The notes beneath the pieces were generated by a model that made no database searches, was not told the DNA's origin, and worked only from the letters and a program-made list of their open reading frames with translations. Positions 1-63,655 of a DNA stretch of 64,000 nt are shown here, in pieces; the first letter of the stretch is position 1; each line of letters starts with the position of its first letter. The stretch spans positions 126,232,001 through 126,296,000 of the forward strand of contig NC_042998.1 of the NCBI RefSeq assembly GCF_006345805.1, read 5' to 3'. Position numbers and translations under genes: made by a program. The DNA is from Octopus sinensis. Taxonomy: Eukaryota.

Positions 1-781
<781 letters not shown>

Positions 782-1132: not shown

Positions 1133-3425
1133 ATGGCTGTGGTGTTTCCTACATACTATAGTGTACTAAAGAATAAACCTTTGAAATTGAATAGCCGGAC
1201 AGTCATTAGTGAGTGTCTTTATACAATCTCAGTGTAATTAGTAATAGGAATCAGCTGGACCAATTTCAAACTTCATTAGCAACTGGCACTTTTCTCAAAC
1301 TATCCACTATGTATGTGTGCATGCAACTGCTATTATTAAGGGTTTTATTAAATTGAACTCACAATTTGCAGAATTGCATTCTTGACAGCTGGTTTGGTTA
1401 ATGAATTAATAACGTCTTATCAGTGTTCATTTTTGATGCTGTACTGTTCTACAGAATAAACTTATCAATGTTTGTGTATCCAATTCAATACACAGTGGTT
1501 ATATATGCAGTTCACTGGATGGTTAGAGCTGATCTCTTTTTCTGCCCATGGTAAAATTGTATAAAATTAACTGTATTTAATTTCAGTTTAGATATGCCGT
1601 GCTTTTTTGAAATTTATGAATTTATTCTGTGGCTTCAAAAACAAATATGTTAGTAATTTATAAATGTACATGGGCAGTGTAGATAGTAGAGACAGTAGTG
1701 TTGTTTGCTCTGTGGTCAGCTTTTTATTTTTGGTGGGGTCAAATATGAATATTATGGTCAATACCTATTAGTCTTAGTGCTTGGTATTAAAAGCTGTTGT
1801 CGCCACAGATATGATTCATACCAATGGGAATTATCTTAAAAAGGCTTTGCACTGTCAAGTTTAAAAACCTCTCTGATAAAATAACACTGATATTTAATTT
1901 TCATTATTGCATTCCGGAATTTGATTAAAAATGTTTGGTTGATGATAAAAATCCTTAATATTTGCAAGGTGTAACCACTGGTTTATAATACCCAAAGTTT
2001 GGTGACTGCTGATGTCGATTAAGCTTTACCAGTAGGGTTGGTATAAGTATTAGCATAATACTCCATCTCCATTCAGTTGGTTCCTTTTGTTACAAAAATA
2101 GATATAAAGAAATCAATTTTTTTGTTTAATTGGGTTTTTAAAAATCCATTTTTTGTAGGGAAGGGAAATTGAAATTATTTCACCAAATGTCCTTTCTCCA
2201 TCTTGGACCAAAAAAATAACATTTATTCTAGTTTGAATTCAACTTCTGGTAGAATACCTGGTGCTTTTCTGTCAAGCTTGTTATTGCAGTTATTCTATTT
2301 TGTAGTTGGTTTTACAAAATTTATATTTAAAATACTAGAGTGAAATATTTTGTTCTCAAAAGCTGGTGTGTTAGTTATATTTTTATTACTTTATGATAAA
2401 ATGTAACTGGATCAATGAATTCTTGGTGGTTCTGATCACTGAGATTTTTCGGAATAGCTACACAGGAGTAGTTTCACACATAGTTCACTCCAGGCCCATG
2501 GCTGATATTCAGTGTTCTTACTGCTAACAACAGTGAGCTGTATCAACCAACTTATACTATTTAAGTATATATACTAAGTTCTTTTCCATGAACACAATAC
2601 AGTCTAGGTAACAGGTTATCAACTATTGACTCTGCCAGTAGGGTTGATATAAATACTAGCATAATACTCAGTCTCTATTCAGTAAGTTCCTTTTGTTACA
2701 AAATATACTTGGTTCCCTTTGTCAGCCAATTAAAGTTACCTAAAGAAACTATTTGTTTTTGAGTTGGGACTAGTCAGATGTCATGTCTTGGATTCACTTT
2801 CAGTAAATTAGCAATGTTTGAATACTATTGTGTAGTTTTAAAGCATTTAGTAATATTTCTCCTGGTGTCAAAAAGACAAAAATAAAAGATTATACACATG
2901 CACACACATATTATTCATGGCCTCATCTTTAGAGATGGAAAAATGTGATATTTGCACCTCTACACTGCAGTTTTGTCTCTGATTATCAATATGTCAGAAG
3001 TCTTGTAGTAATTAGTGTTAACAGCTTTTGTTTAGGTAGAAAATTTCCTATTTCAAATCCATTATGTACCCATCCAGAAATAAAGTATATCTTGATGAAC
3101 AAACTGATTGTAATTAGTTACAGAAAAATTGGGTTTTTAGAGGTGAGCTCAGAAAACTTTTGTTAATTCTTTGATATCAACTGCTTGAGACTAGCCCTGA
3201 TTTTATAGCATAAAACTTTCTGCTTTAAAGTGATAAACTAAACCTTCTATCAAGATTTATTGTCAGTTTATGTTCCAGATATCAGCTCAATAATGCTAGT
3301 TATTTTAAATTCTTCATTAACAAAAGGATTAATTCTATTAAAATAAATGGCAATTGGAAATTAAAGTTGTAATAATTTAGTTTTTTTTTTGTTAAGTTAA
3401 TTTTAATAAAATTTACTTTTTACAG

Positions 3426-20250: not shown

Positions 20251-21283
20251 CCCTTTCGTTACCAAACCCGCCCGTATTTACCTATTCATATTTAAATGAG
20301 AATATCAGAGCAAATCTCTTTATTACATTCGTGAAAACATGTGATTATACTTTGTAAACAGTTCATCTACAGTTTTGTACAATGATCGAAGTGTAATTTT
20401 AATTCCGTGAATTTTGGGAGATTTTTTTCCGAAATTTGTTCCTATTGTGTTTTCAAAATTTGTAATTCTGACAAAAAATGGATACGAATTTCATTATATC
20501 AAGCAGCGAGTCAAAATTCGAAGGCTTTTCTACTGAAGACCTTCATAAATCTAACTCTATGACTGAAAAAAAAAAAGCACGAGGTATTTGATAATGAATC
20601 CGATGTTTCATTTTCCGAAAGTGAAAACAGTGAATCCGAGAGCTCCGACAGCGATAAAGAAAATGAATTGGCACCTGAATGGAGTGAAAATTTTAAAACT
20701 GTTTCTTTCGGTGATTTATCTGAAGAAACTGGACCAAGCCACAGTCTTTCCCAGGAGAGTAAAGCCTTAGACTATTTCTATTTACTTTTTCGAATGAGCC
20801 TATTTGAAATCATTACGGCGGAAACGAACCATTACGCTAAATGTAAACAAAGCGAAAGAAAGGATAGTTTGTGGTTTCCCACAACCTTAAATGAAATTAA
20901 TGCCTATTTTGCCATAAATATTATGGGTATCAGAAAGTTACCCAGAATAACAAATTCTATAGTAAAATTTTGTTGTATACCCAATTGAATATTAGCTAAT
21001 AACCCATTTTCTATAGCGATGTTTGAACAAAATTTTAATAATTTTATATTTTGTTGAATTTACCTGTATCTACCTGCAATTAGAGTCACTTTGTGACAAA
21101 AATTATAGTATAGAATTGGTTGAGAACATTTCATTAAATTATCTTCCAAAAATCAGATTAATATATTGATAAATAAAAAAGTTATAGTTGTTTAATGAAA
21201 CCAGACTAAATTTATGATTGTGTTAGAAATTAATTGAAACATATAAGGGGTGTATTTTGGGCAGAAATATAGTAACGAAAGGG
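20251..21283 (+). mobile_element. Internally deleted piggyBac transposon, 1033 bp, non-autonomous
   Basis: TTAA TSDs at 20247-20250 and 21284-21287; identical 12-bp TIRs ccctttcgttac / gtaacgaaaggg. Transposase N-terminal relic from ATG 20478: acidic stretch then ALDYFYLLF...IITAETNHYA...WFPTTLNEINAYFAINIMGIRKLPRI. Catalytic core absent. Confidence 0.92.
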
Positions 21284-27445: not shown

Positions 27446-27849
27446 CTAGACTTGAACATTGATATTGTGAGAATTGGTTCCGTCCTGAAATAAACTCGAA
27501 GATGTTGGTAATGCATGTTTAGGTTGTGAAGACAAGTTGTGCCTCTCTAACAAGTCTGGTTGGACAGTGTTATCTTGAGATTCATGTGATTCAGATTGAT
27601 GAACAGCAGATGGATGACTGGCTTCAGTGCCACAACCATCTTGAGATTTGTTCACTTGAGTATTCTGCCTGTGTGACACTTTTGATGTAGCTGTCTCAAC
27701 CAACTGCCAAAGTTTCATCTCTGTAGGATCAGACACATTTGCTTCTAGAACTTTTTCAGGTTCATCTCTTTCTTCATAATTCGAAAGACTCTCATTCCTT
27801 ATTTCTGGATCTTCATCAATTTTAGAATCCTTTAAAAAACAGTCATAAT
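27446..27849 (-). CDS. CCDC149: Probable CCDC149 terminal coding exon
   Basis: ctaatcttttcag acceptor, phase 1 in. (D)YDCFLKDSKIDEDPEIRNESLSN...TNSHNINVQV* open for 133 codons to TAG at 27448-27446. Assignment by position and phase. Confidence 0.75.
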
Positions 27850-28392
27850 CTGAAAAGATTAGATATATATATATATATGTATTTATATAGATAGGTATGT
27901 ATATATGTTTTCTATTTTTAATCATTTGGAATCTTCCTGTAAAGAAGGAACTGATTTCTAACAAAGATACAAAACTCCATCATTGGAATGTTATAACAAA
28001 AGCTATGTTGCATTTTAATTTTGAGAAAAGTTTTGCATATTTTTACTGTTCCACTTACAGATTGAATTTGTAATGTGCATATTAGCTAGTTGGCTTCTTT
28101 TTCTGAAAACCCTAGCTTTTCTAGATTGTTATTCAAGCATTTAACAACAAAACCAAGTGCACCAATTATCATTGGTATAAAAGTGAATATATAATCTGGG
28201 CAAAGAAACTGAAGATTTAAAAGCAGTTGTCTATAGTTACTCTCTTCAAGCAATTAGCAGCTCTATTATAACTGAAAAAGCTTTTGCAGAGGATTGGAAA
28301 CAAATTACACTGTTGTACGATGGAGACTTTTGTTTGCAATTAGCACACTCACATAAAGACAAAAGGAAAGAAAAACCACATACATGTACACA

Positions 28393-28395
<3 letters not shown>

Positions 28396-28432
<37 letters not shown>
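28396..28432. repeat. (TA)n microsatellite
   Basis: Pure AT run. Confidence 0.95.
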
Positions 28433-28435
<3 letters not shown>

Positions 28436-29289
28436 GTTGTTGTCATTTTACATCTGATTTCCATACTGATATAATTTCGATGGATCATTTCTGCTTTCTT
28501 AGACAGGTCAGGAGACTACATCTTGCATGGAAGTTTCAGTTTTTATTTGGTTTCTTTGGCTTCATGTCCTTCCTAACACCAATCACTTTACACAAAGTGT
28601 ATTGGGCGCATTTTTAGTGGCATCAGCATTAGAGAGGTTCTTACACCTTCATCAAGACTAAAGGGCCCTCAAAATATATATTTATAATAGGCTTCTTCCA
28701 TATTCCATCAACCAAATTTCACTCATAAGGTACAGGTCAACCCAATGGAAGACACCAGTAATAAATTCCATACTTTGGAAGTGAACCTAAAACAACAGGA
28801 TTCAGAACCATGCCTACAGATATATGCATGTATGTGTAAACACACACACAACACAAACACGCGTACATGCATACCAATGCACTCACACACATGACAATTA
28901 ATTCACCTAGTGAGATAATGGCCATCTTGTTAGTTACAGTTCAGTCAATCACTGTTCACTGTCATGCACCCATGTGTTTCGAGTTGGCTCTTAAGACCAG
29001 CTTATCATCTAAGAAAGAAGCAAAATGAAAAATTAAAGCGATAAAGTCTTTACATTTTTGGATTACAGTTACATGCTTGTACAAGAAGTATCCATTGTAA
29101 AATATCCTGTGACAAGTGAGAGCAAACTGATCATAACTATTTCAGCTGCAGGCTTTTATACCAGAGGGTCTTCACCAGGCTACTTCAATAAAAAAAATAC
29201 TATGGACTGCAAACAAATGTCACTGTCAGAAAGCTACCTTTATTTTTTAAAAAGCCAGTGAATGCAAGGGAAATACAAGCTCACTCATA

Positions 29290-29445
29290 CAAACACACAC
29301 ATTCATACACACAATCCATTCACAAAGCTTTAGTTGGTCTAGAAGAGTAGAAGCCACTTGCTCAAGGTCCCATGCTGTGGGACTTAACTCGAAATCATGT
29401 GACTAGGAAGAAATAAACTTTTTAACCACACAGCCATGCCTGCAT
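29290..29445 (-). mobile_element. tRNA-head SINE (family A), head only
   Basis: ...agaagccacttgctcaaggtcccatgctgtgggacttaactc...accacacagccatgcctgcatc is the reverse complement of the family A head. Confidence 0.6.
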
Positions 29446-29479
29446 CTACACACATATCTATTTATATGTCTCCTCACAA

Positions 29480-30170
29480 GCATTATGGTACCTGCTAGCC
29501 CCTCTTTCTCTCATTGTGCTCACCCACTGCTTTCTAACTCTCTCTTTCTCTTTCACAGTCCTTTCCTCACAACTTCTGTTCCACCTGAAGCCCTCTCATC
29601 ATTCTCTCTATGGCCCAGCCCCATGACCCTACCACACATCTCTTTCCTTCAATGACCTTCTCCCAGAGCCATTTTGTCTCTTCATCACCCTTATCTCTTT
29701 CTTGTTCCCTTCCTTCCACACCTTCTATCCTTATTCACCGCAAACATTAGCCACTTCACCAGTCTTACTACTCTGTTACTCTCTCCACTATCATCTCACA
29801 ACAATAAATCTTTTCCTCTCATCATACTTCACCCTCACTCATCAACTCACCTAAAATCATCACATACTCTCTTCTATTTTTCTTTTAGTTGTGGGAGCTG
29901 TTTAGTTTGCAAGTTACAAGGTGATCTCACCAGTGCTGGTGCCATGAAAAAGGCACCCAGTACACTTTGTAAAATGGTTGGTAAACTGAATAGAGACAAG
30001 CAAGGTTGAGATGAAAACTCTTCAGTTTGCAAGGGAAAAGACTCATGACACAAAACATGCACCCAATACACTCTATAAAGTGACTGTTGTCAGAAAATGT
30101 ATCCAACCATAGAAACCATATCAAAATTGAAACATTGGAGCTTGATGCAAACATCCAACTCATCAGATAC
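29480..30170 (+). mobile_element. Family C retroposon (long CT-rich tract plus shared tail)
   Basis: CT-rich 29480-29885, then tttgcaagttacaaggtgatctcaccagtgctggtgccatgaaaaaggcacccagtacac. Confidence 0.55.
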
Positions 30171-31657
30171 AGTTCAGCTGTTTAATGTATCACACACACA
30201 CACACACACGCATATATATGTCGTCATCACTGTTATAACATCCACTTCTCCATATTAACATAGGTCAGAGACTTATTGAGGTAGTTTTTTCTATTACTAA
30301 CTGCTCTCTCTGCCAGTAAGCCCCACCTGTTTCCCATCAAAAAATATTTTCCCTGGTCCTTCAATCAACAAACAGCTAAGTGGCTAGACATGTTTTTGTG
30401 AAAGATAGTAAATAAAAGACACTTTTTGAATGAATGGTAACTCTGTCTTTGAATTGGCACACATGTCAAGATCTTTCTCTCTATACATCCAAAGGCCCAA
30501 CTAAGCCAACAGTACTTCTTACATCAATGCTGAATGGAGAAATCCCAGAAGATCAATGGTTAGGATTGCCAAGCTCTATCAAGTGAGTAACTGCAACACA
30601 TCTATAGGGGTGACATCCATGGTTGTATAATCAGCAAATGAAAGATTCATTATAACTCAAGCTCCAGATTAAAATTCCAATGAATAATAGAATTGGATGG
30701 TGACAGAGAGTCACATGAATCCGGACAAGCAACATGACTGGATGATATGGCATAACCGTGTATTTAAGAAGTGGACTTGGCCCCAAAATAAATTTCCTTA
30801 GACAATTGTCTTCTACTATAGCTCTGAGATGATCCAAACCTTGAGAGTAAATTTTGTAGACAAAAACTAAAGAAGTCCTTCATATATACATATACCAGGC
30901 ATGTGCCATCAGTAATTAATCAGGGTAAGCAGTTGGTGACGTTTATGTAGTAAAACAAATAAGCAAAATGCAGGTGCACAACTGTGTCGTAGACAGATTT
31001 ACTTCTGCCTTTATAGCACGTAAAGAAAACATTGTTGTAGGAGTGTATGCAGCAAGTGTACTACAGCAGTTCTATGTGTAGCTTTAATACTGAGATTGAA
31101 AGGCAGGGGCAACTTATGCCTGCCTAATCTACAAAACAATACAATATTTTGCATTTTATGTATTATAATCAGAGTAGCCTTCATAATTTTATTGAATTAA
31201 GTGCATATTTTGCCATAAAAGGAAAATATTAATATCAATCTATTTTATTCAGGGTAGGCACTACCTACCTAGACGGCATGTTCCTGACATATACATATAT
31301 TATATGTGTGTTTGTGTATCGTTAGGGTGTCTGTGCCTGAGAGAGAGATAGAGAGAGAAAGAGAGTGGGGAGAGTGTGTATATGTTTATGTCTCCTTGTC
31401 TTGATGTCATACACTAATTGTTATAATCTTTTGTGATAACACATGTGGCCATGTGATAACATATGTGGTCATGTTTGAAGAACTAGAGGAAATATTATCT
31501 TGCTTGGATACAGGTGAGGGTTGGCAGTTGGCAACATGAAGAGTACCCAGTTGTAGAAAAGTTGCATCACAAATTTCATTTGGCCCATGCAAACATGGAA
31601 AAGCTAACATTAAAATTATGATAATGATAATATATATATATATATATATATATACAC

Positions 31658-32766
31658 GAAAGAAGGTTTGAAAATGCAATTCAAAAGATGTTTATTTACT
31701 TTACCGGTTTCACTCTTTGGAAAAAGATTGTCAAAAGTAACATGTAGAAGTTTGGTTGCATTAATTATTGGTTGTTGCAAATTGCTACATTACATATATA
31801 CAGTCTTTGGTAACAGGGACATGTTAAGGACATAAAAAAGTTCAACAAGTTCCTTAAAATATTGGGCTCAAAAGATTACTACATAAATAATCGTTCTCAA
31901 GGACATGCTTAAGATAGTTTCCAGAAGGAATTGATATTGGTATTGTATCTGTATATTCAAACATGCACAGAATATTGGTTGACACAGAGTACTATAATCC
32001 ATATAAATATACATTCTTTGGTGACAAGAGTATGTTGAGAATATAAAAAAGTTTAACAAGCTCATTGAAATAATGGGCACAAAAGATTACAACAAATATA
32101 TTATACATCTCAAGATAATTTCCAGGAGGAATTATTAAAAAAGTTCAGTATACACGTACAGAATATTATGAGTTCAAAAAGATTTACATTATAATAGTCC
32201 GGACAGGTCAGTTTTAGCTTCACCACTATTATTATGTAAATCTTTTTGAACTCATAATATTCTGTACGTGTATACTGAACTTTTTTAATAATTCCTTCTG
32301 GAAATTATCTTGAGATGTATAATATATTTGTTGTAATCTTTTGTGCCCATTATTTCAATGAGCTTGTTAAACTTTTTTATATTCTCAACATACTCTTGTC
32401 ACCAAAGAATGTATATTTATATGGACTATAGTACTCTGTGTCAACCAATATTCTGTGCATGTTTGAATATACAGATACAATACCAATATCAATTCCTTCT
32501 GGAAACTATCTTAAGCATGTCCTTGAGAACGATTATTTATGTAGTAATCTTTTGAGCCCAATATTTTAAGGAACTTGTTGAACTTTTTTATGTCCTTAAC
32601 ATGTCCCTGTTACCAAAGACTGTATATATGTAATGTAGCAATTTGAAACAACCAATAATTAACGCAACCAAACTTCTACATGTTACTCTCGACAATCTTT
32701 TTCCAAAGAGTGAAACCGGTAAAGTAAATAAACATCTTTTAAATTGCATTTTCAAAACCTTCTTTC
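31658..32766. repeat. ~1.1-kb near-perfect inverted repeat (palindrome), possibly a foldback-type element
   Basis: Arms 31658-32198 and 32225-32766 with a 26-bp spacer. Hand alignment gives 8 substitutions and one 1-nt indel. The ORF track shows identical 70-aa peptides at 31868-32080(-) and 32343-32555(+). Confidence 0.95.
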
Positions 32767-32808
32767 ATATATAATTCCACTCGTGCGGTACCCCACAACT
32801 CCACTTTG

Positions 32809-32821
32809 TTATATATATATA

Positions 32822-32858
<37 letters not shown>
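32809..32858. repeat. (TA)n microsatellite right of the large palindrome
   Basis: TA run with one interruption; a matching (TA)n lies at 31630-31654 on the left. Confidence 0.93.
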
Positions 32859-32860
<2 letters not shown>

Positions 32861-34301
32861 AAACTCATCGTGTATACATATATATAAAAGCCAGTTTGCA
32901 GCTGTAGCAGATGTCACTACCGAGCAGTGCCAACTCTAAACCACAGAGATTCAAAGTGAACTGTAACCACTGCAAACTTTTTTGATATTTATGTTACCAA
33001 GTGCAGTTAGTAATTTAAAGACTAAACTTTTTTAGTAAAAAAAGGGCTAATATTAGTCATATATATGTTAGATAAGAAGTATATTAGAAAACTGTAGAGA
33101 GGCAGTGAGAAAGTTAGAAAGAATATTAGTGCTATATACAGAGAATAAATAGATTATTTTACCTGTCAACATCTTCACTAATGTCTAAAAATCAAAATAT
33201 GGAGAACACTGTAAATAGTAGTAGAAGTAATTGTATATAGGCTACATATAGTTTAATGTGCCATAGATTGGATAGTAATGTGCTAATATACAAATAGACA
33301 CATATTAATTACTAACAGAAATAAGTACATATTTTTATCAACAGGTTCTATATAGCAATACACTAATCTGATAAATACAATGAGTTGGTTAATGCTTGAG
33401 ATCAAATGTATCTATGAATGGATGATCAAAGAGGGAATGGTAAAGATGTGACCAGTATTATAAGTTTAGAAAGAAAATTAGAAGCTTTAGTAAACTGATA
33501 TAGCTACAATGAAGAATTCAATCCAGATCAGTGCTTTACCAAGACTATGTCTTACTTTAATATAATTATGTATGTACATGTATACATGTGTGCGTGTTCA
33601 CACACAGACATGGAATTGCAGAAACAACCCACAAATATTGTTGAAGCCATATTAATTAAACAACAAATGCTGTTCTCAATAAACAAACACCAGACAGAAT
33701 GTGACAACCAAATCATTACAAAAGCAATCGTCTGAAGCATGGTCTTTGAAAGATATTGGTCAAGTAGAATGAGATATCACACAACATCAGGCAGTAATAT
33801 TCTTTCAAATCAAAGACACAAGTATTTCACAGCTATGGGTTGAATACATATACAAAAAAAAAAAAATCTGCAGCGTTTCAATGAATTTACATCTGATAGA
33901 GAAGTGTACTTGTTTGGCAACTCATATCATCTGAGATTGTGTATTGAAGCTGAAATAATTACCTCATGAAGGGCTCATTAGTAACATATAAACATAGTTA
34001 TGGTAACTCTCACTTATATCTTAATTGTATAGTTTCTTAAAGCTAGATACTTCATAAGAAGCAATGTTATTAAAAAACAAATGTGAACGGAATGCTTTCT
34101 GTGTTTCTTAAATGACTAAATTTGACAATGTAACTGTTATCACCACACAAAAGCATTAACACTTTAAATATAGTATGACTATATAAATGAAAAAGAGATT
34201 AACATAGGCATTTTTATACCTAATATTATATGCATATTATTATTTTTATGTGTATGTGTGTATATATTTACGTTTTTTATGTCTAATCCCCCCCCCCTCT
34301 C

Positions 34302-34850
34302 TCTATATATATATATATATAGAAAGGAGAGATTCAGTCCATTTGTGTGTTTGTTCATTTGTTTGTCCACCAAAACGAAAGTAAATGGTTCAAGGGAAGC
34401 TATTATGTATATGTATCTTATCTACTATTATTATTATCTATATATATATATAAAAGAGAGATTCAAAAAGAGATTCTTTCCATTTGTGTGTTTGTTCATT
34501 CATTTGTCAACCAAAATGAAAGTAAGTTGTTCAAGGGAAGCTATTATGCTTTTTCCATATCTATATGCCATTGTCTAATTTGTCTCAACAAAAATTATGC
34601 AATGGTACAACATTAATTGTGCACAAACTTATGAGGAACTGCATTGAAGTAAATATTCTCACTGGTTGTGGTAAAGGTGACACTGTCTTCATTCATCACA
34701 TACCAGTTATACCATCTAATGTCTCAGTCAAAGTTAAGCCATTACAGTTTCTTATCCCACTTTCTTTTGCCATGAGCATTAATAAAACTCAGGGCCAAAT
34801 ACTAAAAGTTGCTGGTTTGCAACTTGAAGAACAAACAGAAATTCGTATAT
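34302..34850 (+). mobile_element. Helitron relic: two tandem 5'-end-like units fused to a PIF1-like helicase C-terminal fragment
   Basis: 34565-34835 translates NLSQQKLCNGTTLIVHKLMRNCIEVNILTGCGKGDTVFIHHIPVIPS...LSFAMSINKTQGQILKVAGLQLEE (Helitron helicase motifs CNGT and FAMSINKxQGQ). Upstream ~135-bp unit starting TCTATATAT.. is duplicated. No 3' CTRR end found. Confidence 0.75.
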
Positions 34851-35944
34851 GAAATTCATTTTTCTTTCAATTATTACATGCTTTTCTCTTATATAATACA
34901 CACATACAGGACAAGTAAACCTAAATCTATAGTCGTAGTCTCACCCTGGTTCAGATTCGAAACTGAATCTTTCAATTCTCCTTGGGCATACGGCCTGTTC
35001 AAATGTCAAAAGAAGCCGTGACAAATGGGTCTTCCACTTCACCTGGGGCCTTCTCGGTGCCTTTACACAGTCACCTGGATTTCATGAAGCTATTCTATAT
35101 CCTTGGTTCCCAAACTTTTTCAAAATTTTCATCCTACAGATCCCCTTTTAATCAGGAATTTTTCAATTCTTAATTTGTATTTCATAAATATTTTCTAAAG
35201 ATTTATGTGCACAAACATATTTATGTAAGTAATAATGGAATAATTTATTTATTGGTATATGTTTATATGCTTATTGATAGAAAAAATATAGATTTTTAAT
35301 TACTATATTTGTTGATTGTAATTTAGATACTTATTTTTATGTATTTATTATTTTATAATTATTATATGCGAACTAAAATCTAAAAATATTAATAGTGATT
35401 GTTTTGTTAAATAGTTTAGTAATTAAATATTAGAGTATAACCAGGTTAAAGATATTCTATAGTTTATTAATGTTTTGTAAGCTAAATTATATCTTCACAG
35501 ATAAATACATTTTTCTATCTATCTACTCTATTTTTTTACCTTAAATATTTAACATAATAAATGTATTGTAGGGAACTGATATTAATGTTTTAAGTTTCAA
35601 ATTTAGTTAATGGTATTTCTTCTATAAGAAAAAACATTATTTTATTTATTTTTTTAATAAATATTGTTTAACTCTGTTTGCTTATTTATTTAACTATTAT
35701 TGTTAACCTGAAGATTGACTATAATTTTAAATTGAATTCATTTCAATTAAATTTAATTGTAATTCGAATTTCATTATAGCCATGAAACATACGTAGTCTT
35801 TTACTTATTATATATTGATTATTCATTTTTATATTTTTTGTGATCTAGTTATTTGTTTCATAAAAATATTTTTTATTTGTTATTTATGTTTTGGTTTATG
35901 TCTATCATTGTTTGAGTTGCATAATAGTGGTTTTATCTCTAATT

Positions 35945-35949
<5 letters not shown>

Positions 35950-36000
<51 letters not shown>

Positions 36001-36017
36001 TTATATATATATATATA
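35950..36017. repeat. Interrupted (TA)n microsatellite ending an extremely AT-rich block (35170-35950)
   Basis: Direct reading. Confidence 0.9.
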
Positions 36018-36170
36018 GGTGCAGGCATAGCTCTTATGATTAAGAAGTTTGCTTCCTAATCACTTGGTTTTGGGTTCAGTTCCACTGCATGGCACTTTAG
36101 ACAGGTGCCTTCTCCTATAGCCCTGGGCCAACCAAAGCAGATTTGGTAGATGGAAACTGAAAAAGTTAGT
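36017..36170 (+). mobile_element. tRNA-head SINE (family A), head only
   Basis: gtgcaggcatagct...gggttcagttccactgcatggcac...tatagccctgggccaaccaaagc; B-box-like GGTTCAGTTCC. Confidence 0.7.
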
Positions 36171-37159
36171 TGTACTAATAAATGTGTATATGGATATAAA
36201 TGTGTGCGCATTTGTGTTTCTTTGTTTTAACACTTCATGGAAGTCATGGAAGTTATCACAATGCTAAATAAGCAGAAGAAATGTAAGAAATGTATACAAT
36301 ATTTTCAATTAAAAATAGCAAAATAGTGACTAAATTAATTTTCTACTTCTACTGGACTCTGTTTTGCTTATACTTAGTATCAATGCTTCAGGCATAAAAT
36401 CAAATATTGCTCAGAAGGTTTTGATAGTAGGAAAATCAAAAGCTTTTGCTTTAAAAGTGAATTTCTAAAGTTAAAAATGGGTGTGATTCTTTTTCTATAC
36501 ACATACTTAATTTATCATCATCAATTAGGTAAAAAAAAAAGAAGGGAGTTTATGTCAGCTGTAGCAGAGTTTGATCTTAAATCCACAAAGAAATTAAACC
36601 ATAAATATTCAGAATGATGTCCTTAAACATTTTGCTATTTTCTTATTCAATAAATTATAACAATGTCATAAGGCATGATACAGTCCACTAAAAAAGACAA
36701 AAAAACTGCCTTTAAGATCTAATACATGGAGTAAAATATGTAAAAAAAATAATAAAAAGAAAACCCAAAACAAGACACTTTATAAAAGCAAGGAAGATAT
36801 TTATCTATCTTCTAAACATTAGAGAAACATTTCAGGAGTAGGGGCTAAACGCTAGTGAAGTTAATGAGACACAACTCCACAGAAAGGCAGTGCCTCATTG
36901 AGTTTACTGGGGTCTTGTCTTACAGGGTTCCCTAGCACCTCATCTTTAGATAGGTTGTTAGTCAACCACAGAAAGCTATTTGAAGATGATTTAGCATTTA
37001 TTACAAACAATATAGGATAAATACAGGATATAATGTTTTACCCAGGAACAGAAATTTTGAAGTGTAACTAATGAGCTTGTAGTTCATCACATCTCTATTC
37101 ATAAAAGAGACTCTGCAAGAAATAAAGCAAGAGGGAAATAAAACTTTCTCATAGCTTAC

Positions 37160-37489
37160 CGAAAAATTTTAGGTCCAAACTGTTTGCTGAAATTTCTCCA
37201 TCACTTTTTTCTAAGGATTGCTGATTTAGAATTTCTTTAGTTGGAAGTAAATCTAGGTCTGTGAGTGAGACAACTTTATATGGAGTTTGTTGATTGCTAT
37301 GGGAAGGGCTGTTATCTACAGTGGATGCAGGAGTACTCAAAGTCTCCAGTGTTTCAGTATCTTCTTCAGTGTCTTTATCGTATATAGCGCCATCAGGCTC
37401 AGATTTGTTTTCTGGTGAAGAGACATCGGGTAACAAGGATTTCACTTCCTCATATTCTGACCGGATCTTTGCAAGGACTGGATGGGGAC
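37160..37489 (-). CDS. CCDC149: CCDC149 C-terminal-region exon (low complexity, Ser/Thr/acidic)
   Basis: ttccag acceptor, gtaagc donor, 330 nt open and phase 1-1: (G)PHPVLAKIRSEYEEVKSLLPDVSSPENKSEPDG...NSLDLKFF. Assignment to CCDC149 is by position, strand and phase. Confidence 0.78.
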
Positions 37490-37609: not shown

Positions 37610-37995
37610 AGGTGTAGTTGTGTAGTTAAAAAGTTAGCTTCCCAACCACATGGTTTCCAGTTCAGTCCCATTGTTTGGCACTTTGGACAACTGTCTTCTA
37701 CTATGGCCCTGGGCCAACCAAAGCCTCATGAGTAGATTTGGTACATGGAAACTGAAGCTCACCATATATATATGTGAGAGAGAGAATGTTTGCATCTCTT
37801 TGTCCTGACATTGCATGGCTGTTGTAAATAAATATCATTCCTTTCCAAATTTCTGTGAAAATGTCTGGCCAGGGAGAAATATCACCTTGCTTGGAAATAG
37901 GTAAGGGTTGATGACAGGAAGAGCATTTGGCCTTAGAATATCTGCTTCTATAAACTCTGTCTGACCCATGCAAGCATGGAAAAGTGGATACTCAT
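37610..37995 (+). mobile_element. Full-length family A SINE ending in the RTE-like (GAT)n tail
   Basis: Head ggtgtagttgtgtag...gttcagtccc, core ggacaactgtcttctactatggcc, tail acccatgcaagcatggaaaagtgg...gacgatgataatg. Confidence 0.8.
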
Positions 37996-40070: not shown

Positions 40071-40081
40071 TGTGTATATAC

Positions 40082-40280
40082 AAATTTTTTGTGTAATGAG
40101 ATAAAAAAACAAGGCTGTATAGATATTAGAACATTTATAGATAGAAGGTCTCACAGCTGTTTCTAGGATATTATAGGAATATTATTAATTAATATCCTAG
40201 AAACAGCTGTAAGACCTTCTATCTATAAATGCTCTAATATCTATACAGCCTTGGTGTTTTATCTCATTATGCAAAAAATT
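40082..40280. repeat. ~200-bp palindrome (arms ~92 bp, 16-bp AT spacer)
   Basis: Arms 40082-40173 and 40190-40280 are reverse complements with few mismatches (e.g. gatagaaggtct / agaccttctatc, aggctgtatagatattaga / tctaatatctatacagcct). Confidence 0.9.
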
Positions 40281-40426
40281 CATATATATAGATATACATA
40301 CATATACACATTTAGACATGTATACATACACACGTAAATGTTCTGATGTTTGCTTGTTTGTCTGGAAACAGCTGTACAAATTCTCAATGAGTTTTCACAA
40401 AAATTTGCATACGTTTTTTTTTAATG

Positions 40427-40972
40427 TTTCATTCATTAGATTGCGGCCATGCTGGGGCACCACTTTGACCCTTTAGCATTCAGATTACTCTGTTAAATGC
40501 AATGCTTTTTGAAGTGATCATGCACAATCTCATAGATTAGAGATTTTGATGATGTAATTGTTTATTTTTAGAATAACATTATAGGGAGTGCATGAGAGGC
40601 CAAACCTGGCTAGGTTAAAGGTAAAACTGGTAGAATATTTTGGTTACATATGGCCAGTTTAAATACTAAAGGGTTAAAGAACTTTTAGTTGAATGAAACA
40701 ACTCCAGGATTTTCTTTTTTTAAGCTTGGTACTTATTCTATCACTCTCTTTTTGCCAAACTGCTAAGTTAAAGTTGCCAAGTGGTGGTGGTGGACAAACA
40801 CACACACACACACACAACAGGCTTCTTTCAGTTTCTTTCTACGAAATCCACTCATAAGGATTTGGTTGGCCTGAGGCTATAGGAGAAGACACTTGCCTAA
40901 GGTGTCACACAATAGGATTGGACCTAGAACTAAGTGGTTGGGAGGTAAGCTTATTACCACACAGCCATGTCC
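40427..40972 (-). mobile_element. Family A SINE with the alternative 3' half (ccagcatggccgca...tgaatgaaac), interrupted by a piggyBac MITE
   Basis: Aligns by eye with 63283-63655 once 40469-40673 is removed. Confidence 0.75.
40469..40673. mobile_element. piggyBac-type MITE, 205 bp
   Basis: TIRs ccctttagcatt / aatactaaaggg (1 mismatch), flanked by TTGA (40465-40468) and TTAA (40674-40677). Confidence 0.8.
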
Positions 40973-41119
40973 GTTCCTTCATAAAGACAGACGAAATGCC
41001 ACTAAGCATTTTGCCTGGTATGCTAACAATTCTATCAGTCAAAATAATTTCAGAATAATGCATGATGGAATAAAATGGAGTCGAAGGTTTCCCTGGGGCA
41101 ATATCTGTACATTTTGTAA

Positions 41120-45288: not shown

Positions 45289-46104
45289 ATTATATTTAAA
45301 ATGATTGCGTATACTCAGATGTGGAAAGACTTGTATTGTGGAAATGTGGAAATTGTTCTGCCATATAGAGAATTTTCACAGTGAAGATTTTTCCATATCT
45401 GAGTGTATATGAATATGTTAAATATAATTGTACACAAAATTTAGGTCAATGCTGCTTTGAGCAACTCAAAGTAAGATGCATGCATGCGCACGCACTCACA
45501 CGCGCACACACACACACACACACACAAAATAAATATGGTTCTTAAATACTATCAGACTGAGGCAATTTATTGTTCTCAAAGGAACAGTAAATATTCAGCT
45601 TTATATGTTCAAAAGAAAAAATTTTACACATATTTGCACTCAAAAAATCTAAGAAAATGTTACACAGAAAACTGTAAAGAAATATCATAATTGATCTTAA
45701 TACATTATACACACATGAACATGGGTAGAATACAACTATTCAAACATTATAAAGAGATGTCTTTGGAAAAACATGTACATGAGTGTCTTACAAAACAAAA
45801 TGTATATTTATAGATTCAAGTTTGATTGTTGCAAAATATGCATGTGTACATATGTGTACACACACATATATGCATATGTATACTTTTACAAACAGACTGT
45901 TGCATAAACTGAAATCAATTTTGCACCGATATGTATTGCAATGTTCAGCCTGTAAGCAAATACTACAATGATACTGAAGGAAATGCAAAACACCAAAACT
46001 ATTGAACCAAAGAGAGACAAAGAAAAACCAAATGATCTATTACAGATCTCAGACAGAGTGTGAAACCTGTTTATTAAGAAACTTATCATCAAGTTCATTA
46101 AATA

Positions 46105-46240
46105 TCATCATCATCATCATTTAATGTGTTTTCCATGCTGGCATAGGTTGGATGGTTTGAGAGGGGCTGGCCAAATGGAGAGCTGCATCAGGCTCCAATT
46201 GTCTATTTTGGCATGGTTTCTATGACTGCATACTTTTCCT
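46105..46240 (-). mobile_element. Truncated shared retroposon tail
   Basis: (atc)n ttaatgtgttttccatgctggcataggttggatggtttg. Confidence 0.6.
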
Positions 46241-46254
46241 TACACATAAGTCCT

Positions 46255-46763
46255 GAGGACAGCTGATATCTTGAGTATTGAGGCAATGGTGCACAAGCAC
46301 CAGTTATATTGGACTGGACCCTTATTAGAATGAAGGATAGTAGGATCCCTAAGCAGATGCTATATGGGGAACTTGTGAATGGAAAAAGACCCCGGCAGAA
46401 ACCAAGGATGTGATTTAAGGACTGTGTCAAGTCCTCATTATATGCAGGAGACTGACTAGGAGAGCAATGCTTGTCATTACCACAGATGGAGGATGCAGGT
46501 TAAGGAGGGGTGGTCAACACTTTTGAGAGAGCACATATTCTGCATGAGGAACTTAAGTGTGCTGCTCGAAAGTGCACTGCTGGTGTAGTGAATGGGGAAA
46601 ACTTTGGTAAGCATTGGTTTGTAATGTTTGTAGTTGTGTATGCTTGTCAAGAGCAGGGCTCATAAGCCACCAACGGAACTGCAAATGCAAATTATTAGTT
46701 AGTCCTAGAGCACACAATGTTCCTGAAGGTCAGCAATGGTCTTCCTCGGTCACGAGTGGATGA

Positions 46764-46768
<5 letters not shown>
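46255..46768 (+). mobile_element. 5'-truncated RTE-1/BovB-like LINE, C-terminal end
   Basis: SIEAMVHKHQLYWTG...IRMKDSRIPKQMLYGELVNGKRPRQKP, then a C2H2-like CNVCSCVCLSRAGLISHQR; ends in (TA)n. Confidence 0.85.

Positions 46769-46800
<32 letters not shown>
46769..46800. repeat. (TA)n tail of the BovB-like LINE and target of the RTE insertion
   Basis: Direct reading. Confidence 0.9.
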
Positions 46801-46803
<3 letters not shown>

Positions 46804-47598
46804 GCGAGAATGGATGAAGATAGGCGTGTGAGAAAGTGCCAATCCCTAGCAGTTGAGGGAACCCGTGGAAGAGGTAGACCCAGGAAAACCTGGGACGAGG
46901 TGGTGAAGCACGACCTTCGAACATTAGGTCTCACCATGGAAATGACCAGAGACCGAGACCTATGGAAGTATGCTGTGCGTGAGAAGACCCGGCAAGACTA
47001 GTGAAGCCATAACCCGTGGCCCCTACCTGGGACGTAGTCAGTCCGCCTGTGCATACCTTCCTGCTTGTGACACTTGTGAAGACCTGTTGAGGCAAGTCAA
47101 ATCAAAGTCAAATCGAATCAAGTCAAACCAAATCAAAATAGATGAACATCAATGGAATTTGTATCCTTGTGGTACCAGTGCCGGTGGCACATAAGAAAAC
47201 CATCCGAACGGGACCGTAGCCAGTACCGCATCGACTGGCCTCCGTGCTGTGGGCACGTAACAAACACCGTCCGAGCGTGGCCGTCTGCCAGCCTCGTCTG
47301 GCACCTGTGTCGGTGGCACATAATAACACCATCCGAGCGTGGCCGTCTGGCACCTGTGTCGGTGGCACATAAAAACACCATCCGAGCGTGGCCGTTCGCC
47401 AGCCTCGTCTGGCACCTGTGTCGGTGGCACATAAAATCACCCACTACACTCTCGGAGTGGTTGGCGTTAGGAAGGGCATCCAGCTGTAGAAACACTGCCA
47501 GATCTGACTGGCCTGGTGCAGCCTTCGGGCTCCCCAGACCCCAGTTGAACCGTCCAACCCATGCTAGCATGGAAAGTGGACGTTAAACGATGATGATG
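46801..47598 (+). mobile_element. Young 5'-truncated RTE LINE with full 3'UTR, inserted in a (TA)n tract
   Basis: Uninterrupted frame VARMDEDRRVRKCQSLAVEGTRGRGRPRKTWDEVVKHDLRTLGLTMEMTRDRDLWKYAVREKTRQD* (46801-47001). CpG-rich 3'UTR with internal repeats, a (GAT)n tail, and (TA)n on both sides. Confidence 0.9.
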
Positions 47599-47804
47599 AT
47601 GATGATATATATATATAAATGCATTTATAATGGTGAAAAAGGCCTCACAGAGGAGATGACAAAGAACCAATGCTTCTGGCAGTTTGCTGTGCTTGAGAAA
47701 ACAAGTCAAGCTGAGTATATTTATTGCTGTTCATGCATACAGGTATGTCCTCTACATCCCTCTCTCAGCCAAGAAATCATTGTCTTGTGGGCTTATGGGT
47801 GCTG

Positions 47805-48085
47805 GTGTTACATAAAAGTGTCCATACTGGTGCCATGTAAAAGCACCTATGCTGATGTCAGGTAAAAGCACCCAAGCCAGTGCCACATAAAAGCGACCAT
47901 GCTGGTGCCATGCAAAAGTGCTCATTACACTCTGTAAAGTAGTTGGCATTAGGAAGGGCATCCAGCAATAGAAACCATGTCAAAACAGACAAATGGAACC
48001 CAGGCTGTTCTCTAGCTGGTCAGCTTCTGTCAAACCATCCAACTCATGCCAGCATGGAGGACGGACATTAAATAAGGATGATGAT
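47805..48085 (+). repeat. 5 x 25-bp tandem array of gtgccacgtaaaagcac-type units followed by the shared retroposon tail
   Basis: Units start at 47805, 47830, 47855, 47880 and 47905; tail ends aaataaggatgatgat. Confidence 0.75.
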
Positions 48086-56228: not shown

Positions 56229-56370
56229 ATGCAGGTGTGGCTTCCAGCCACATGGTTCCTGGTTCACTTTCTCTGAGTAGTACCTTGGGTAAGTGTCTTC
56301 TACTATAACCTCAGGTTGACCAAAGTCTTGTGAGTAGATTTGGTAGACAGAAACTGAAAGAAGTTAGTTG

Positions 56371-56434
<64 letters not shown>

Positions 56435-56750
56435 GCGCGTGTGTGTGTGCGTGCGTGTGTGTATTCATGCATGTATGTATGTATATATGAATGTATGTAT
56501 GCATGTGTGAGTGCATGTATGTTACTGACTCCTTGTCTTGACATTGCATGATAGTTGCAAACAAGTGCTGTCATACCAGTGTGTCATTCATTTCCAATAT
56601 CCAGTAAAAACATGTCTGATTACAGGGAAATATCATCTTACTCAGAAACAGGTGAAGGTTGGCAACAGGAAGGGCATCCAACCAGAGAATATTCACCTCA
56701 ATAAATTCCGTTTGACCCATGCAAATATGTACGTTAAAACAATGGTGATT
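56229..56750 (+). mobile_element. Family A SINE with an expanded internal (GT)n and RTE-like tail
   Basis: Core ccttgggtaagtgtcttctactataacc; gtgagtagatttggtagacagaaactgaaagaag; tail ggaagggcatccaacc...acccatgcaaatatg. Confidence 0.8.
56373..56462. repeat. (GT)n compound microsatellite inside a SINE
   Basis: Pure GT run to ~56429, then mixed GC/GT. Confidence 0.95.
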
Positions 56751-59143
56751 ATATATGTATTTAGTGTACTCTTACTTTTGCTTTAAAAAAAAGAAAAAAA
56801 CCCTGCAGAATATAGAATTTGTTTTGCACAATGGCTTCTGAAAACTAATGGGAACATTGTTCACATATAACAGGATTAATTAGAATAGTATGAAGTAGAG
56901 GCACCTATAGAATAGAGTCCAAGCACTATGCATATGACTTTTTAGGTGCAAATTCCTTTCTATTTATGCTGCTTGCTCAATCAGTTAAGGTTGTGAAGCC
57001 GGTGCTATATCCAACCACTGATACACCAATGTAATCAGTAATTACTAAATGTGCAAAGGAAAAGCACAATTTTAATGTGTTGTTTGTTAGCCTATTTTGT
57101 AGGTAACCATACATAGCCTATCCTATATAAATGTTTTTAGTTATGATTCTGAATTTCATGCCACAATAATCTCTAAAGAAATTTGAAATTTAAAATTAGA
57201 CTTGAAGTAATGAATAAAAATTAGCAATGAATTTGATTGCATGCATGAGTGAGAGAGAAAGCGAGGGGAAGGAGGGAATGTGTGTGTGGGAGGGGGAGGG
57301 GGCTATGTGTGCGTGTGCAGCCAGGCATTATCTTCAGATTTCCATTTATAAGTGGCTGCGTCTACCACATTTGGCCTTATACACAAACGTTTGTAGATGA
57401 TCACTTTAAATGTTTTGGTACTAGTTAGTATATATTTTATACAATTTTATACATACAGATTATATGAAACTAATTATTATTCATTTTGCTGTTTAAGTAT
57501 TTGTTTATCAATAAATTATCATAACTGATCATTCAGAATATATACAAGATGTTAAGAAGAGAGTTCATGAACAGATGTTTTCTTTCTTAATGCTATTTAC
57601 TAGTATGATTATCAATAAATCAACAGCTTTCCATATTTCATTTACGACAGCTAGATTTGATGGAGCTACTATATTATTAGTATTCATTTTGTGATTTATT
57701 TATGAATTACTTTAACTAATCAATCAGATTACATGCAAAATAGTTAGAAGAGAGACCACAAGAGCTTTTAAGTGATATGAACAATCACCAGAGTCCATGT
57801 CAGAATATAGTCTCTTGATAATTCACCCAATGCCTCAGCAACAGTTTCATTTTAAGACTACCTCCTTAAGATTCTTTCTACCTGCTTCATCTCTTTCTCC
57901 CTCTTTCAGTATAGATATATCCCTTTTTTTTCTCATAACACTCTCCTCATAACACTCTCTTTCTCTCCCTGTCTCTCTCACATGTCCCATTTTCCCACTT
58001 GCTGAGGTCTATTTGTGAAACAATACCTGTTCATTGTAGCATCCTATTTGCCAAACACGTCTAGTTAGCAGTATATCTCTATTGCTATTTTGCTCTTCTT
58101 ATATCTCACTGTCTCCTTCACTCCATATTTCTATCTCTTTACCAGTTTCTACACTGTTTGCATGCACTGTGAACAACTTTGGCAGTATCTAACTCTGAAT
58201 GAAAGTCTCCACAGATGAGGACCACACATCATCTAGAAAAGCAATAGCTAAATGAAAATGGACAGGGAGTAGAGAGACACTTTAGTCCTGATAGACAACT
58301 TCTTTAGTACTTGTAGCATAATAAAATGTCGAGTGATTGCTAACAAGAAGAGCATTCAGCCAATAAAGCCACATCAAAATTATGACAGTCACAAATATAA
58401 TGAAAAGCACTGATTGTCCAACATAGGACTAAGCTACCATGTCAGTGATGTGCATAGAAGAGGCCAGATGGAGCCATTAGACTTGTGCGAGAATCCCACA
58501 GCCATTAAACAATCACATGAACTCCTTCACTGATGCAGAAAATAGACACTCAGCTACAACCCATGCCATCATGAGAAATTCTCCTTTTCCTGTCAGGTAC
58601 AAAACATCAGGGCTGCCACCATTAACACTGATGTAAAGATGTTGGATCAAAGGAAAATTATATGCAATGATTAACTTTCACTTCAAAACACAAAAGAGCC
58701 AACTCTATTTCCATTATGTGGGTGGGAAGAATCATTAGTCAGTGGCATGATTGACATTCTAACTTTCCAAAGAAAATCTTTATCCAGCATGTACCAAAAA
58801 ATTAACAACTGGTTCTTATTTTAGAAAAGGTGCTAACAACCAGCCCCTTATAAAAAAAAAAACAATGAAAAAAGGTCCAGCTCACCAGTGTGTATACAAA
58901 TACTCATCAACATAAATTTAATATTTAATTTCCAGGCTTGGGTCTGCAGTATAACCCAAGAAACCCTACATCTTGATTCTACATCATCTTATCTGTGAAA
59001 TCTAATGTGTGCATGCATTTTTTCAGGTGAGATGACAAAGGGCTGAAATACCTAGTTGATGCCAGGCTGTACTCAAGAAGACCCGTACTCTACAGCAGAA
59101 GTGTTAAGACCAACCCTTCTGATAGTGTAAAGCACTCATGACA

Positions 59144-63282: not shown

Positions 63283-63655
63283 TTATCTTCCACTTGTTTC
63301 AGTCATTAGACTATGGCCATGCTGGGGCACCACCTTGAAGAATTTTTCATTGAATGAATCAATCCCAGTGTCTGATATTTATTTTATCGTTCTCTTTTGC
63401 CAAACCACTAAGTTACAGGGATGTAAACAGACCAACACCAGCTGTCAAGTGGTGGTGGGGAACAAACACAGAGACACACACACATATATACGAGAAGCTT
63501 CTTTCAGTTTCTATCTACCAGATCCACTCACAAGGCTTTGATCAGCCTGGGGCTATAGTAGAAGACACTTGCCCAAGGTGCTACACAGTAGGACTGAACT
63601 TGGAACCATGTAGTTGGGAAGTAAGCTTCTTACCACACAGTCACATCTGTGCCTA
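63283..63655 (-). mobile_element. Family A SINE with the alternative (non-RTE-tail) 3' half
   Basis: ttgtttcagtcattagactatggccatgctggggcacc...ctatagtagaagacacttgcccaaggtgc...cttaccacacagtc. Confidence 0.8.

Follow-up and report, generated by a model that had tools for sequence, protein, structure and literature searches.

A stretch of 64,000 nucleotides from the genome of Octopus sinensis (NCBI RefSeq assembly GCF_006345805.1, contig NC_042998.1, positions 126,232,001 to 126,296,000 of the forward strand) was analysed and is referred to here as the window; coordinates count from its first letter. The window carries coding exons of the gene CCDC149 on its minus strand and, in the last intron of that gene, a near-perfect inverted repeat of 1.1 kb, which is real and far beyond chance. 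This palindrome had been noticed in a preliminary description of the sequence, where it was taken for an element of an unrecognised family, either of foldback type or a giant MITE (miniature inverted-repeat transposable element). The descriptive statements made there were all borne out, the interpretation in part. In the present analysis the palindrome is most likely something ordinary, either a foldback-type mobile element or a local inverted duplication.

The host gene and its last intron

The host gene was recognised from a minus-strand exon near 59.7 kb (Pfam PF09789, E = 6e-24), and the conserved domain ends at about 50.5 kb. A protein derived from a Logan transcript of a relative (P0037) links the exon at 50.5 kb with a further exon at 37160-37489. 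This penultimate coding exon (minus strand, GPHPVLAKIRSEYEEVKSLLPDV…DLKFF) is bounded by a polypyrimidine-cag/G acceptor and a G/gtaagc donor, the slash marking the splice junction. Splicing from 37160 to an acceptor at 27849 (ttttcag/AT) keeps the reading frame and adds 134 codons before a stop, which defines a terminal coding exon at 27446-27849 on the minus strand (DYDCFLKDSKIDEDPE…NINVQV, then stop). A homologue of the terminal exon was found on a transcript contig of the relative (L004; tblastn E = 3e-13), and both end in NVQV followed by a stop. Homologues of both flanking exons thus occur on the relative's transcript contig.

The last intron therefore spans 27850-37159 (9,310 nt), and the palindrome lies within it, with the donor 4.4 kb and the acceptor 3.8 kb away. 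This placement follows from the splice sites, the in-frame junction and the relative's transcript with both exons, and it bears out the earlier proposals that CCDC149 is the host gene and that the palindrome is intronic. The transcript contig of the relative (L004, Logan SRR27666061) has a frame shift at the junction of its penultimate and terminal CCDC149 exons, at about nt 700-800. Its called protein ends …QLFGFNQIY and the homologue of the terminal exon lies in another frame; the junction in the window is in frame. Either an alternative isoform or an error of assembly accounts for this frame shift.

Anatomy of the palindrome

The palindrome consists of two reverse-complementary arms, the left at 31658-32198 (plus strand, 541 nt, 71% AT) and the right at 32225-32766 (minus strand, 542 nt). 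Global alignment of the left arm with the reverse complement of the right gave 8 substitutions and one indel of 1 nt, at an identity of 98.3%, which is the very count that had been made by hand. A separate repeat search of the window returned an inverted repeat with a length of 532 nt, an identity of 98% and a gap of 26 nt separating its arms, and no other inverted repeat of comparable size was found in the 64 kb. The arms enclose an asymmetric spacer of 26 nt (32199-32224, CCGGACAGGTCAGTTTTAGCTTCACC), which contains CCGG, forms the loop of the hairpin and has a GC content of 54% against 29% in the arms, so that its description as richer in GC was accurate. The whole element measures 1,109-1,113 bp and is 70.5% AT.

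Each arm is itself modular. A lag of 211 was the sole significant peak of autocorrelation within the arm (z = 5.4), in agreement with the tandem duplication of about 210 bp that had been seen before. The two tandem units (about 205-211 nt) are 77% identical across 205 aligned positions. A profile built from the units matched exactly four sites in the window: unit 1 (31754-31961) and unit 2 (31962-32181) on the plus strand of the left arm, and their mirror images on the minus strand of the right arm, unit 2' at 32242-32461 and unit 1' at 32462-32669. The left arm is completed by an outer domain of about 96 nt (31658-31753, plus strand) and an inner stub next to the spacer (32182-32198, plus strand). 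The motifs AAAAGAT and CTTTGG are present in the outer domain and in the units alike, with 5 occurrences where 0.28 were expected. The longest open reading frame (ORF) of an arm is 70 amino acids, and the element had rightly been described as lacking a real one. When the spacer was compared with the sequence of the tandem units, the two orientations scored nearly equally (25 vs 23), and the ancestral arm is not told by this score.

Ends of the element and the TA tracts

On the left, a tract of (AT)12.5 at 31630-31654, identified by Tandem Repeats Finder and by direct reading, ends three bases before the arm. These three bases, CAC (31655-31657, plus strand), have no counterpart on the right and may be the terminus of the element, junction filler, or the product of two T>C changes in the TA run. 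On the right, the arm is followed by ATATATA (32767-32773), then by 36 unique nucleotides (ATTCCACTCGTGCGGTACCCCACAACTCCACTTTGT), then by (TA)25 at 32810-32858; this right-flank context (32774-32858) has no further copy in the window. The report of (TA)n on both flanks was thus correct, and the wider limits first given to the palindrome (31651-32773) are accounted for, since the inverted repeat, when read without gaps, reaches a further 7 nt into the tracts of TA at the price of two C/T mismatches. TA runs make up 1.8% of the window, which puts the chance of abutting one near 0.011 for each end.

The sequence on either side is TATATA, and it lengthens to ATATATA (31648-31654 and 32767-32773) once CAC is assigned to the element. 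The right-hand ATATATA is accordingly a candidate for one copy of a target-site duplication (TSD) of 6-7 bp, or for junction microhomology. Because TA runs are self-complementary, the sequence here would look the same for a TSD, for a continuation of the inverted repeat and for a junction formed by microhomology.

The left TA tract belongs to an older repeat resembling a short interspersed element (SINE). This SINE-like repeat occupies 30796-31654 on the plus strand, and the (AT)12.5 tract that abuts the palindrome is an expansion of its 3' tail (…aaaattatgataatgataat). Its family, which has an internal microsatellite (GT/GA/TA), is represented in the window by copies at 30796-31654, 56232-56763, 37627-37991, 40798-40978 and 63474-63654 that are 63-81% alike, and presumably recalls repeats of the octopus. 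A 21-nt match of 90% (TAATTGTTATAATCTTTTGTG) was noted between this left-flank repeat (31415-31435) and unit 2 of the arms (32325-32345 and 32078-32098). The extended alignment has E = 0.014, and the match is probably due to chance; a 20-nt tandem repeat (31432-31474) adjoins it.

Search for further copies

A second copy of the element was sought in the 64-kb window with blastn at word size 9 and with nhmmer, using both the unit profile and the whole arm, and only the two arms were returned. A terminal 24-mer, with 3 mismatches allowed, likewise matched nothing in the window beyond the two arms. The concatenated ORFs of the arm had no match in a collection of 5.8 billion proteins, and an exact look-up of the 70-amino-acid ORF there was empty; the source species is evidently missing from this collection. 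A query of 237 amino acids from the last two CCDC149 exons found at best 58-64% identity there, in the penultimate exon only, so that nothing follows from the negative result for the arm. When contigs of JGI metagenomes and of prokaryotic genomes were scanned for exact patterns, 0 matches were obtained, the source species being almost certainly outside both. The orthologous locus of the relative (L003) aligns with the window in the exon only, at 62.6% nucleotide identity, and its intron does not align; the arm sequence was not found in the relative's contigs L001-L003.

These searches bear on the idea that two independent insertions of one repeat of about 541 nt, a SINE for example, landed tail to tail 26 bp apart. 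The genome is rich in interspersed repeats, which speaks for it, yet the 541-nt unit has no further copy in the 64 kb, and it has neither a tRNA-like head nor an A-rich or simple-repeat tail; a scan for tRNA genes and SINE heads found nothing. Both copies would also need to be complete down to the same nucleotide and of the same age, and a landing 26 bp apart is improbable. Of the explanations considered, this is the one given the least credence, and hardly any at that.

Two other sets of palindromes were met. The window contains a second palindrome of unrelated sequence at 40071-40292, with arms of 99 nt at 92% identity and a spacer of 16 nt. It parses as TATATA/CA…CA/TATATA, the element proper being 40081-40282, and is TA-bounded as is the large palindrome; it has no other copy in the window, and a weak partial match adjoins it at 40362-40423. 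The CCDC149 locus of the relative (L002) carries two copies, at 1272-1674 and 2807-3210, of a palindromic MITE of about 403 nt. The arms of this MITE are 137-181 nt long and 84-87% identical, its ends read AACTCTGTC…GACAGAGTT, and TA on both sides corresponds to a Tc1/mariner-type duplication.

Differences between the arms

The eight substitutions between the arms lie at 31682, 31733, 31735, 31760, 31777, 31997, 32126 and 32190, and the sole indel is an extra T at 32757, inside a run of T. Six of the substitutions are transitions and two are transversions, with CpG/CpA differences at 31733 and 31760. To judge by their kinds, these differences are the signature of real germline mutation and not of read error.

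This has consequences for the possibility that the second arm is an artefact, produced by a foldback or chimeric long read or by a mis-join in assembly. Long-read and amplification-based libraries are known to fail at palindromes, and the present one marks a spot where short-read assembly and PCR would likely fail. The palindrome is internal, though, with distinct, unique and non-palindromic flanks on each side. Eight transition-biased substitutions, two of them CpG/CpA, and one homopolymer indel are not the pattern of read errors or polishing, and the window also has the smaller palindrome, whose arms are 8% diverged. The spacer does not look like a known sequencing adapter. The argument already made against a foldback-read artefact, from mutation-like differences, holds and is joined by that from the unique flanks; an artefact is considered very improbable.

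The distribution of the differences had been read as a hint of gene conversion between the arms. The clustering itself was recovered: six of the nine differences fall within the outer 120 nt, and 31778-31996 (219 nt) is identical between the arms. The longest difference-free gap has P = 0.09 by simulation, and the enrichment of differences in the outer 130 nt has P = 0.009 with a cut-off that was chosen post hoc. The pattern is thus weakly non-random, the statistics do not support arm-to-arm gene conversion, and this part of the preliminary description was not upheld.

Origin of the palindrome

The reading favoured here, to which we give about even chances, is that the palindrome is one copy of a non-autonomous, non-coding DNA transposon of foldback type. 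Such an element would consist of two terminal inverted repeats (TIRs) of about 541 nt around a middle domain of 26 nt, each repeat being built from a flanking domain of about 96 nt and two old tandem units of about 210 nt. Within the last intron of CCDC149 it would have inserted into the (TA)n tail of the older SINE-like repeat, presumably mobilised in trans by a transposase that prefers TA runs, and would have left a putative target-site duplication of 6-7 bp, TATATA(T). The insertion is placed as recent relative to the internal duplication, because divergence is 1.5% between the arms and about 23% between the units. None of this implies that the host benefits.

Several features point to this origin. 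The TIRs, at 541/542 nt in an element of 1,109 nt, account for most of it, as in foldback elements, the arms have the modular build of an outer domain and two tandem units, and the middle is short (26 nt) and non-coding. Duplications of 7-10 bp are usual for foldback elements, and here ATATATA stands on both sides if CAC belongs to the element, a self-complementary microsatellite motif that carries little information. That both ends abut TA runs counts for a transposon. The GC-rich spacer, which differs from its AT-rich surroundings, would fit a remnant of foreign internal sequence, and the transition-biased differences between the arms, which look like real mutations, may be counted on the same side. 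Palindromic elements are frequent in the source and related genomes, as the palindrome at 40071-40292 and the MITE pair of the relative illustrate, and this too speaks for a transposon.

Other observations weigh against it. The 64-kb window holds no second copy, no solo terminus and no related element, and neither the arm ORFs nor the exact patterns found a match in collections that almost certainly lack the species. The putative TSD, being a self-complementary microsatellite motif, has the same look as a repeat extension or microhomology. The left end has the unmatched CAC, and the right TA run is just 7 nt long before the 36 unique nucleotides begin. The ends show no recognisable terminal motif of a superfamily, and no transposase for the palindrome was found in the window, where the only transposase remnants are fragments of piggyBac type and of Helitron/Pif1 type, neither linked to the palindrome.

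Much of the same evidence can be read in another way, namely as a one-off local inverted duplication. A break or a stalled fork beside an intronic segment of about 541 nt would have led to fold-back priming or template switching, whereby the segment, already carrying its 210-nt duplication, was copied in inverted orientation, with 26 nt left as a loop and TA-run microhomology sealing the outer junction. Both routes are established sources of palindromes de novo, fold-back priming starting from short inverted repeats and template switching occurring at palindromes (PMC7999016). Such an event would account for a single copy in all of the sequence examined. The outer limits lie in self-complementary TA runs, which are ideal microhomology for an inverted join, and the unmatched CAC resembles junction filler. 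A process associated with TA runs and independent of sequence would explain the second, unrelated TA-bounded palindrome just as well as transposition would. The scheme requires, however, that two events be coordinated and that they stop exactly at TA runs, and the inner junctions lack microhomology. Reported fold-back loops measure 3-12 nt (PMC7999016) whereas the loop here is 26 nt, the GC-rich spacer is atypical of the local intron, and an arm made of a flanking domain and tandem units is that of a foldback transposon. A local duplication is a serious contender, though the less likely of the two.

Folding of the RNA and the DNA

Whatever the origin of the palindrome, its sole predictable effect, according to folding calculations, is a long RNA hairpin. 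The inner 1000 nt, folded as the minus (sense) strand, formed a single hairpin at -802.8 kcal/mol, compared with -196 ± 8 for shuffled sequences (z = -76.6), and the potential for about 540 bp of double-stranded RNA (dsRNA) that had been foreseen is thus confirmed by computation. Counted from the list of differences, the stem predicted for the sense strand comprises 533 Watson-Crick and 5 G·U pairs, along with 3 mismatches and 1 bulge, and that for the antisense strand would have 7 mismatches. Five of the six transitions are compatible with G·U pairing in the sense strand and give C·A mismatches in the antisense strand, a bias that is not significant (P = 0.11).

Minus-strand transcription through the palindrome would give the CCDC149 pre-mRNA a stem of about 540 bp that could serve as a substrate for hyper-editing by ADAR and perhaps for Dicer. 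From established ADAR biology (PMC5625713), hyper-editing of the stem and its processing by Dicer are possible outcomes. A 540-bp intramolecular duplex in a pre-mRNA is, for any origin, of the type that predominates among substrates of A-to-I hyper-editing in animals. At the level of DNA, the palindrome would be a potential hairpin or cruciform site, with extrusion limited by the 26-nt spacer, and might be fragile, as first suggested; by analogy with other palindromes a hairpin may form on the lagging strand during replication (PMC7999016).

The near-perfect sense stem raises the possibility that the locus is maintained by selection as a source of hairpin RNA, either for endogenous small interfering RNAs (endo-siRNAs), as with the hpRNAs of Drosophila, or as an ADAR-binding or editing-dependent regulator of the last intron, with arms kept alike by conversion. 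The G·U-compatible transitions (five of six) and the 219-nt stretch free of differences would agree with this, but neither the G·U bias (P = 0.11) nor the gap (P = 0.09) is significant. An hpRNA locus would draw its arms from a target gene, to which they are complementary, and would yield small RNAs of 21-22 nt; no resemblance between the arm and a gene was found, either in the window or in the protein collection. A search of Rfam 15 gave no family match, the only hit being of chance level (E = 0.35; 32 bits vs a gathering score of 90) and lying in the (TA)n flank. The locus of the relative shows no conservation, and the 1.5% divergence of the arms is already predicted by a simple recent origin. 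Selection for a hairpin RNA is accordingly a long shot. The same slight credence is given to a fuller scheme in which a foldback family of cephalopods, as yet uncatalogued and targeting (TA)n tracts, would be transcribed within CCDC149 and act as a working dsRNA source, yielding endo-siRNAs or an ADAR sink that affects the last intron, with conversion keeping the sense stem intact.

Other features of the window

A fragment at 34526-34849 (plus strand), 1.7 kb from the palindrome, resembles the C-terminal part of a Pif1/Helitron-like helicase, with a weak match to Pfam Pif1_2B, and a direct repeat of 141 nt (34328-34407 and 34469-34548, 90% alike) comes before it. The proximity of this fragment, together with the insertion of the palindrome between A and T, prompted a comparison with Helitrons. 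This identity was rejected: the ends are not of the form 5'-TC…CTRR-3', and there is no subterminal 3' hairpin besides the palindrome itself. A piggyBac-type transposase fragment (DDE_Tnp_1_7, E = 6e-7) lies at 20563-20985 on the plus strand, downstream of the CCDC149 stop codon.

Near the start of the window, an ORF fragment at 413-781 (plus strand) matches domain 2 of eRF1 (Pfam E = 1.5e-20). This fragment is a pseudogene or else belongs, as an exon, to a neighbouring release-factor gene on the strand opposite to CCDC149. The region 46000-48000 is a GC-rich block (46% vs 34% for the window). It includes a 49-nt tandem repeat at 47295-47395. Both strands are open at 47136-47583, with ORFs of about 146-149 amino acids, and the ORF at 46699-46998 (…GRGRPRKTWDEVV…) is retroelement-like.

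Comparison with known systems

The palindrome can be compared with several known classes of inverted repeat. It resembles the fold-back and template-switch duplications in its short asymmetric spacer and in having one junction in self-complementary microhomology; typical fold-back events differ in giving very large palindromes with loops of 3-12 nt, whereas the arms here are short and end cleanly at TA runs (PMC7999016). The human palindromes PATRR11, PATRR22 and PATRR17 are likewise near-perfect, several hundred bp long, cruciform-prone and sometimes intronic, PATRR17 lying in NF1, and they are not known to be transposons. Palindromic AT-rich repeats (PATRRs) are defined as more than 90% AT, nearly perfect and without a spacer (PMC4940405). 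This identity was rejected for the octopus palindrome, which is 70.5% AT and has an asymmetric spacer of 26 nt.

Insertion next to TA microsatellites has precedents in plants. The MuTAnT elements of Medicago are Mutator-like TIR elements that target TA microsatellites (PMC4486113), and microsatellite-associated MITEs have been documented (PMC8449440; PMC5907723). As in these, TA dinucleotide repeats bound the present element on both sides and the sequence is non-coding. The plant elements have short TIRs and hundreds of copies, while the palindrome has TIRs of 541 nt and a single copy in the window. At 1,109-1,113 bp it also exceeds the usual size of a MITE (below about 800 bp). The label first proposed, a foldback element or giant MITE of an unrecognised family, is consistent with the anatomy but not established, the window having shown no second copy, no unambiguous TSD and no transposase for it.

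The closest anatomical parallels are the Drosophila foldback elements FB, Galileo and, above all, Tetris. In Drosophila virilis, Tetris has a flanking domain, tandem repeats of about 220 bp that are about 70% AT, a non-coding middle and a TSD of 8-9 bp, and its flanking domain has a short stretch in common with its repeats (PMC4079207). Here, too, inverted repeats make up nearly the whole element and combine a flanking domain with AT-rich repeats of about 210-220 bp. The middle is short and non-coding as in Tetris, motifs of the flanking domain recur in the repeats, and a TSD of 7-9 bp is possible. The palindrome differs from the Drosophila elements in having two units per arm, which are old (77% alike), a middle of 26 nt, a non-insect host and a TSD that is ambiguous within a TA run. 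The likeness is one of anatomy, drawn from one copy, with no sequence similarity shown. Should it be one of a true mobile family, it would add a TA-run-targeting foldback element with long TIRs and modules of about 210 nt to the poorly catalogued repeats of invertebrates. Such modules can seed satellites, as TIR-220 has done in Drosophila virilis.

As a predicted source of dsRNA, finally, the palindrome has company in its own group of animals. Long, near-perfect dsRNA loci are reported to be exceptionally frequent in Octopus bimaculoides, and palindromic repeats, such as the palindromic Harbinger repeat of Xenopus, serve as hyper-editing substrates (PMC5625713). In those loci a self-complementary repeat in a pre-mRNA forms long dsRNA on its own, as is predicted here by folding. 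With dsRNA-forming loci and palindromic hyper-editing substrates already known, the palindrome would not surprise a specialist; and because the octopus is already reported to be rich in such loci (PMC5625713), the last intron of CCDC149 provides one more example of them and raises no new question.

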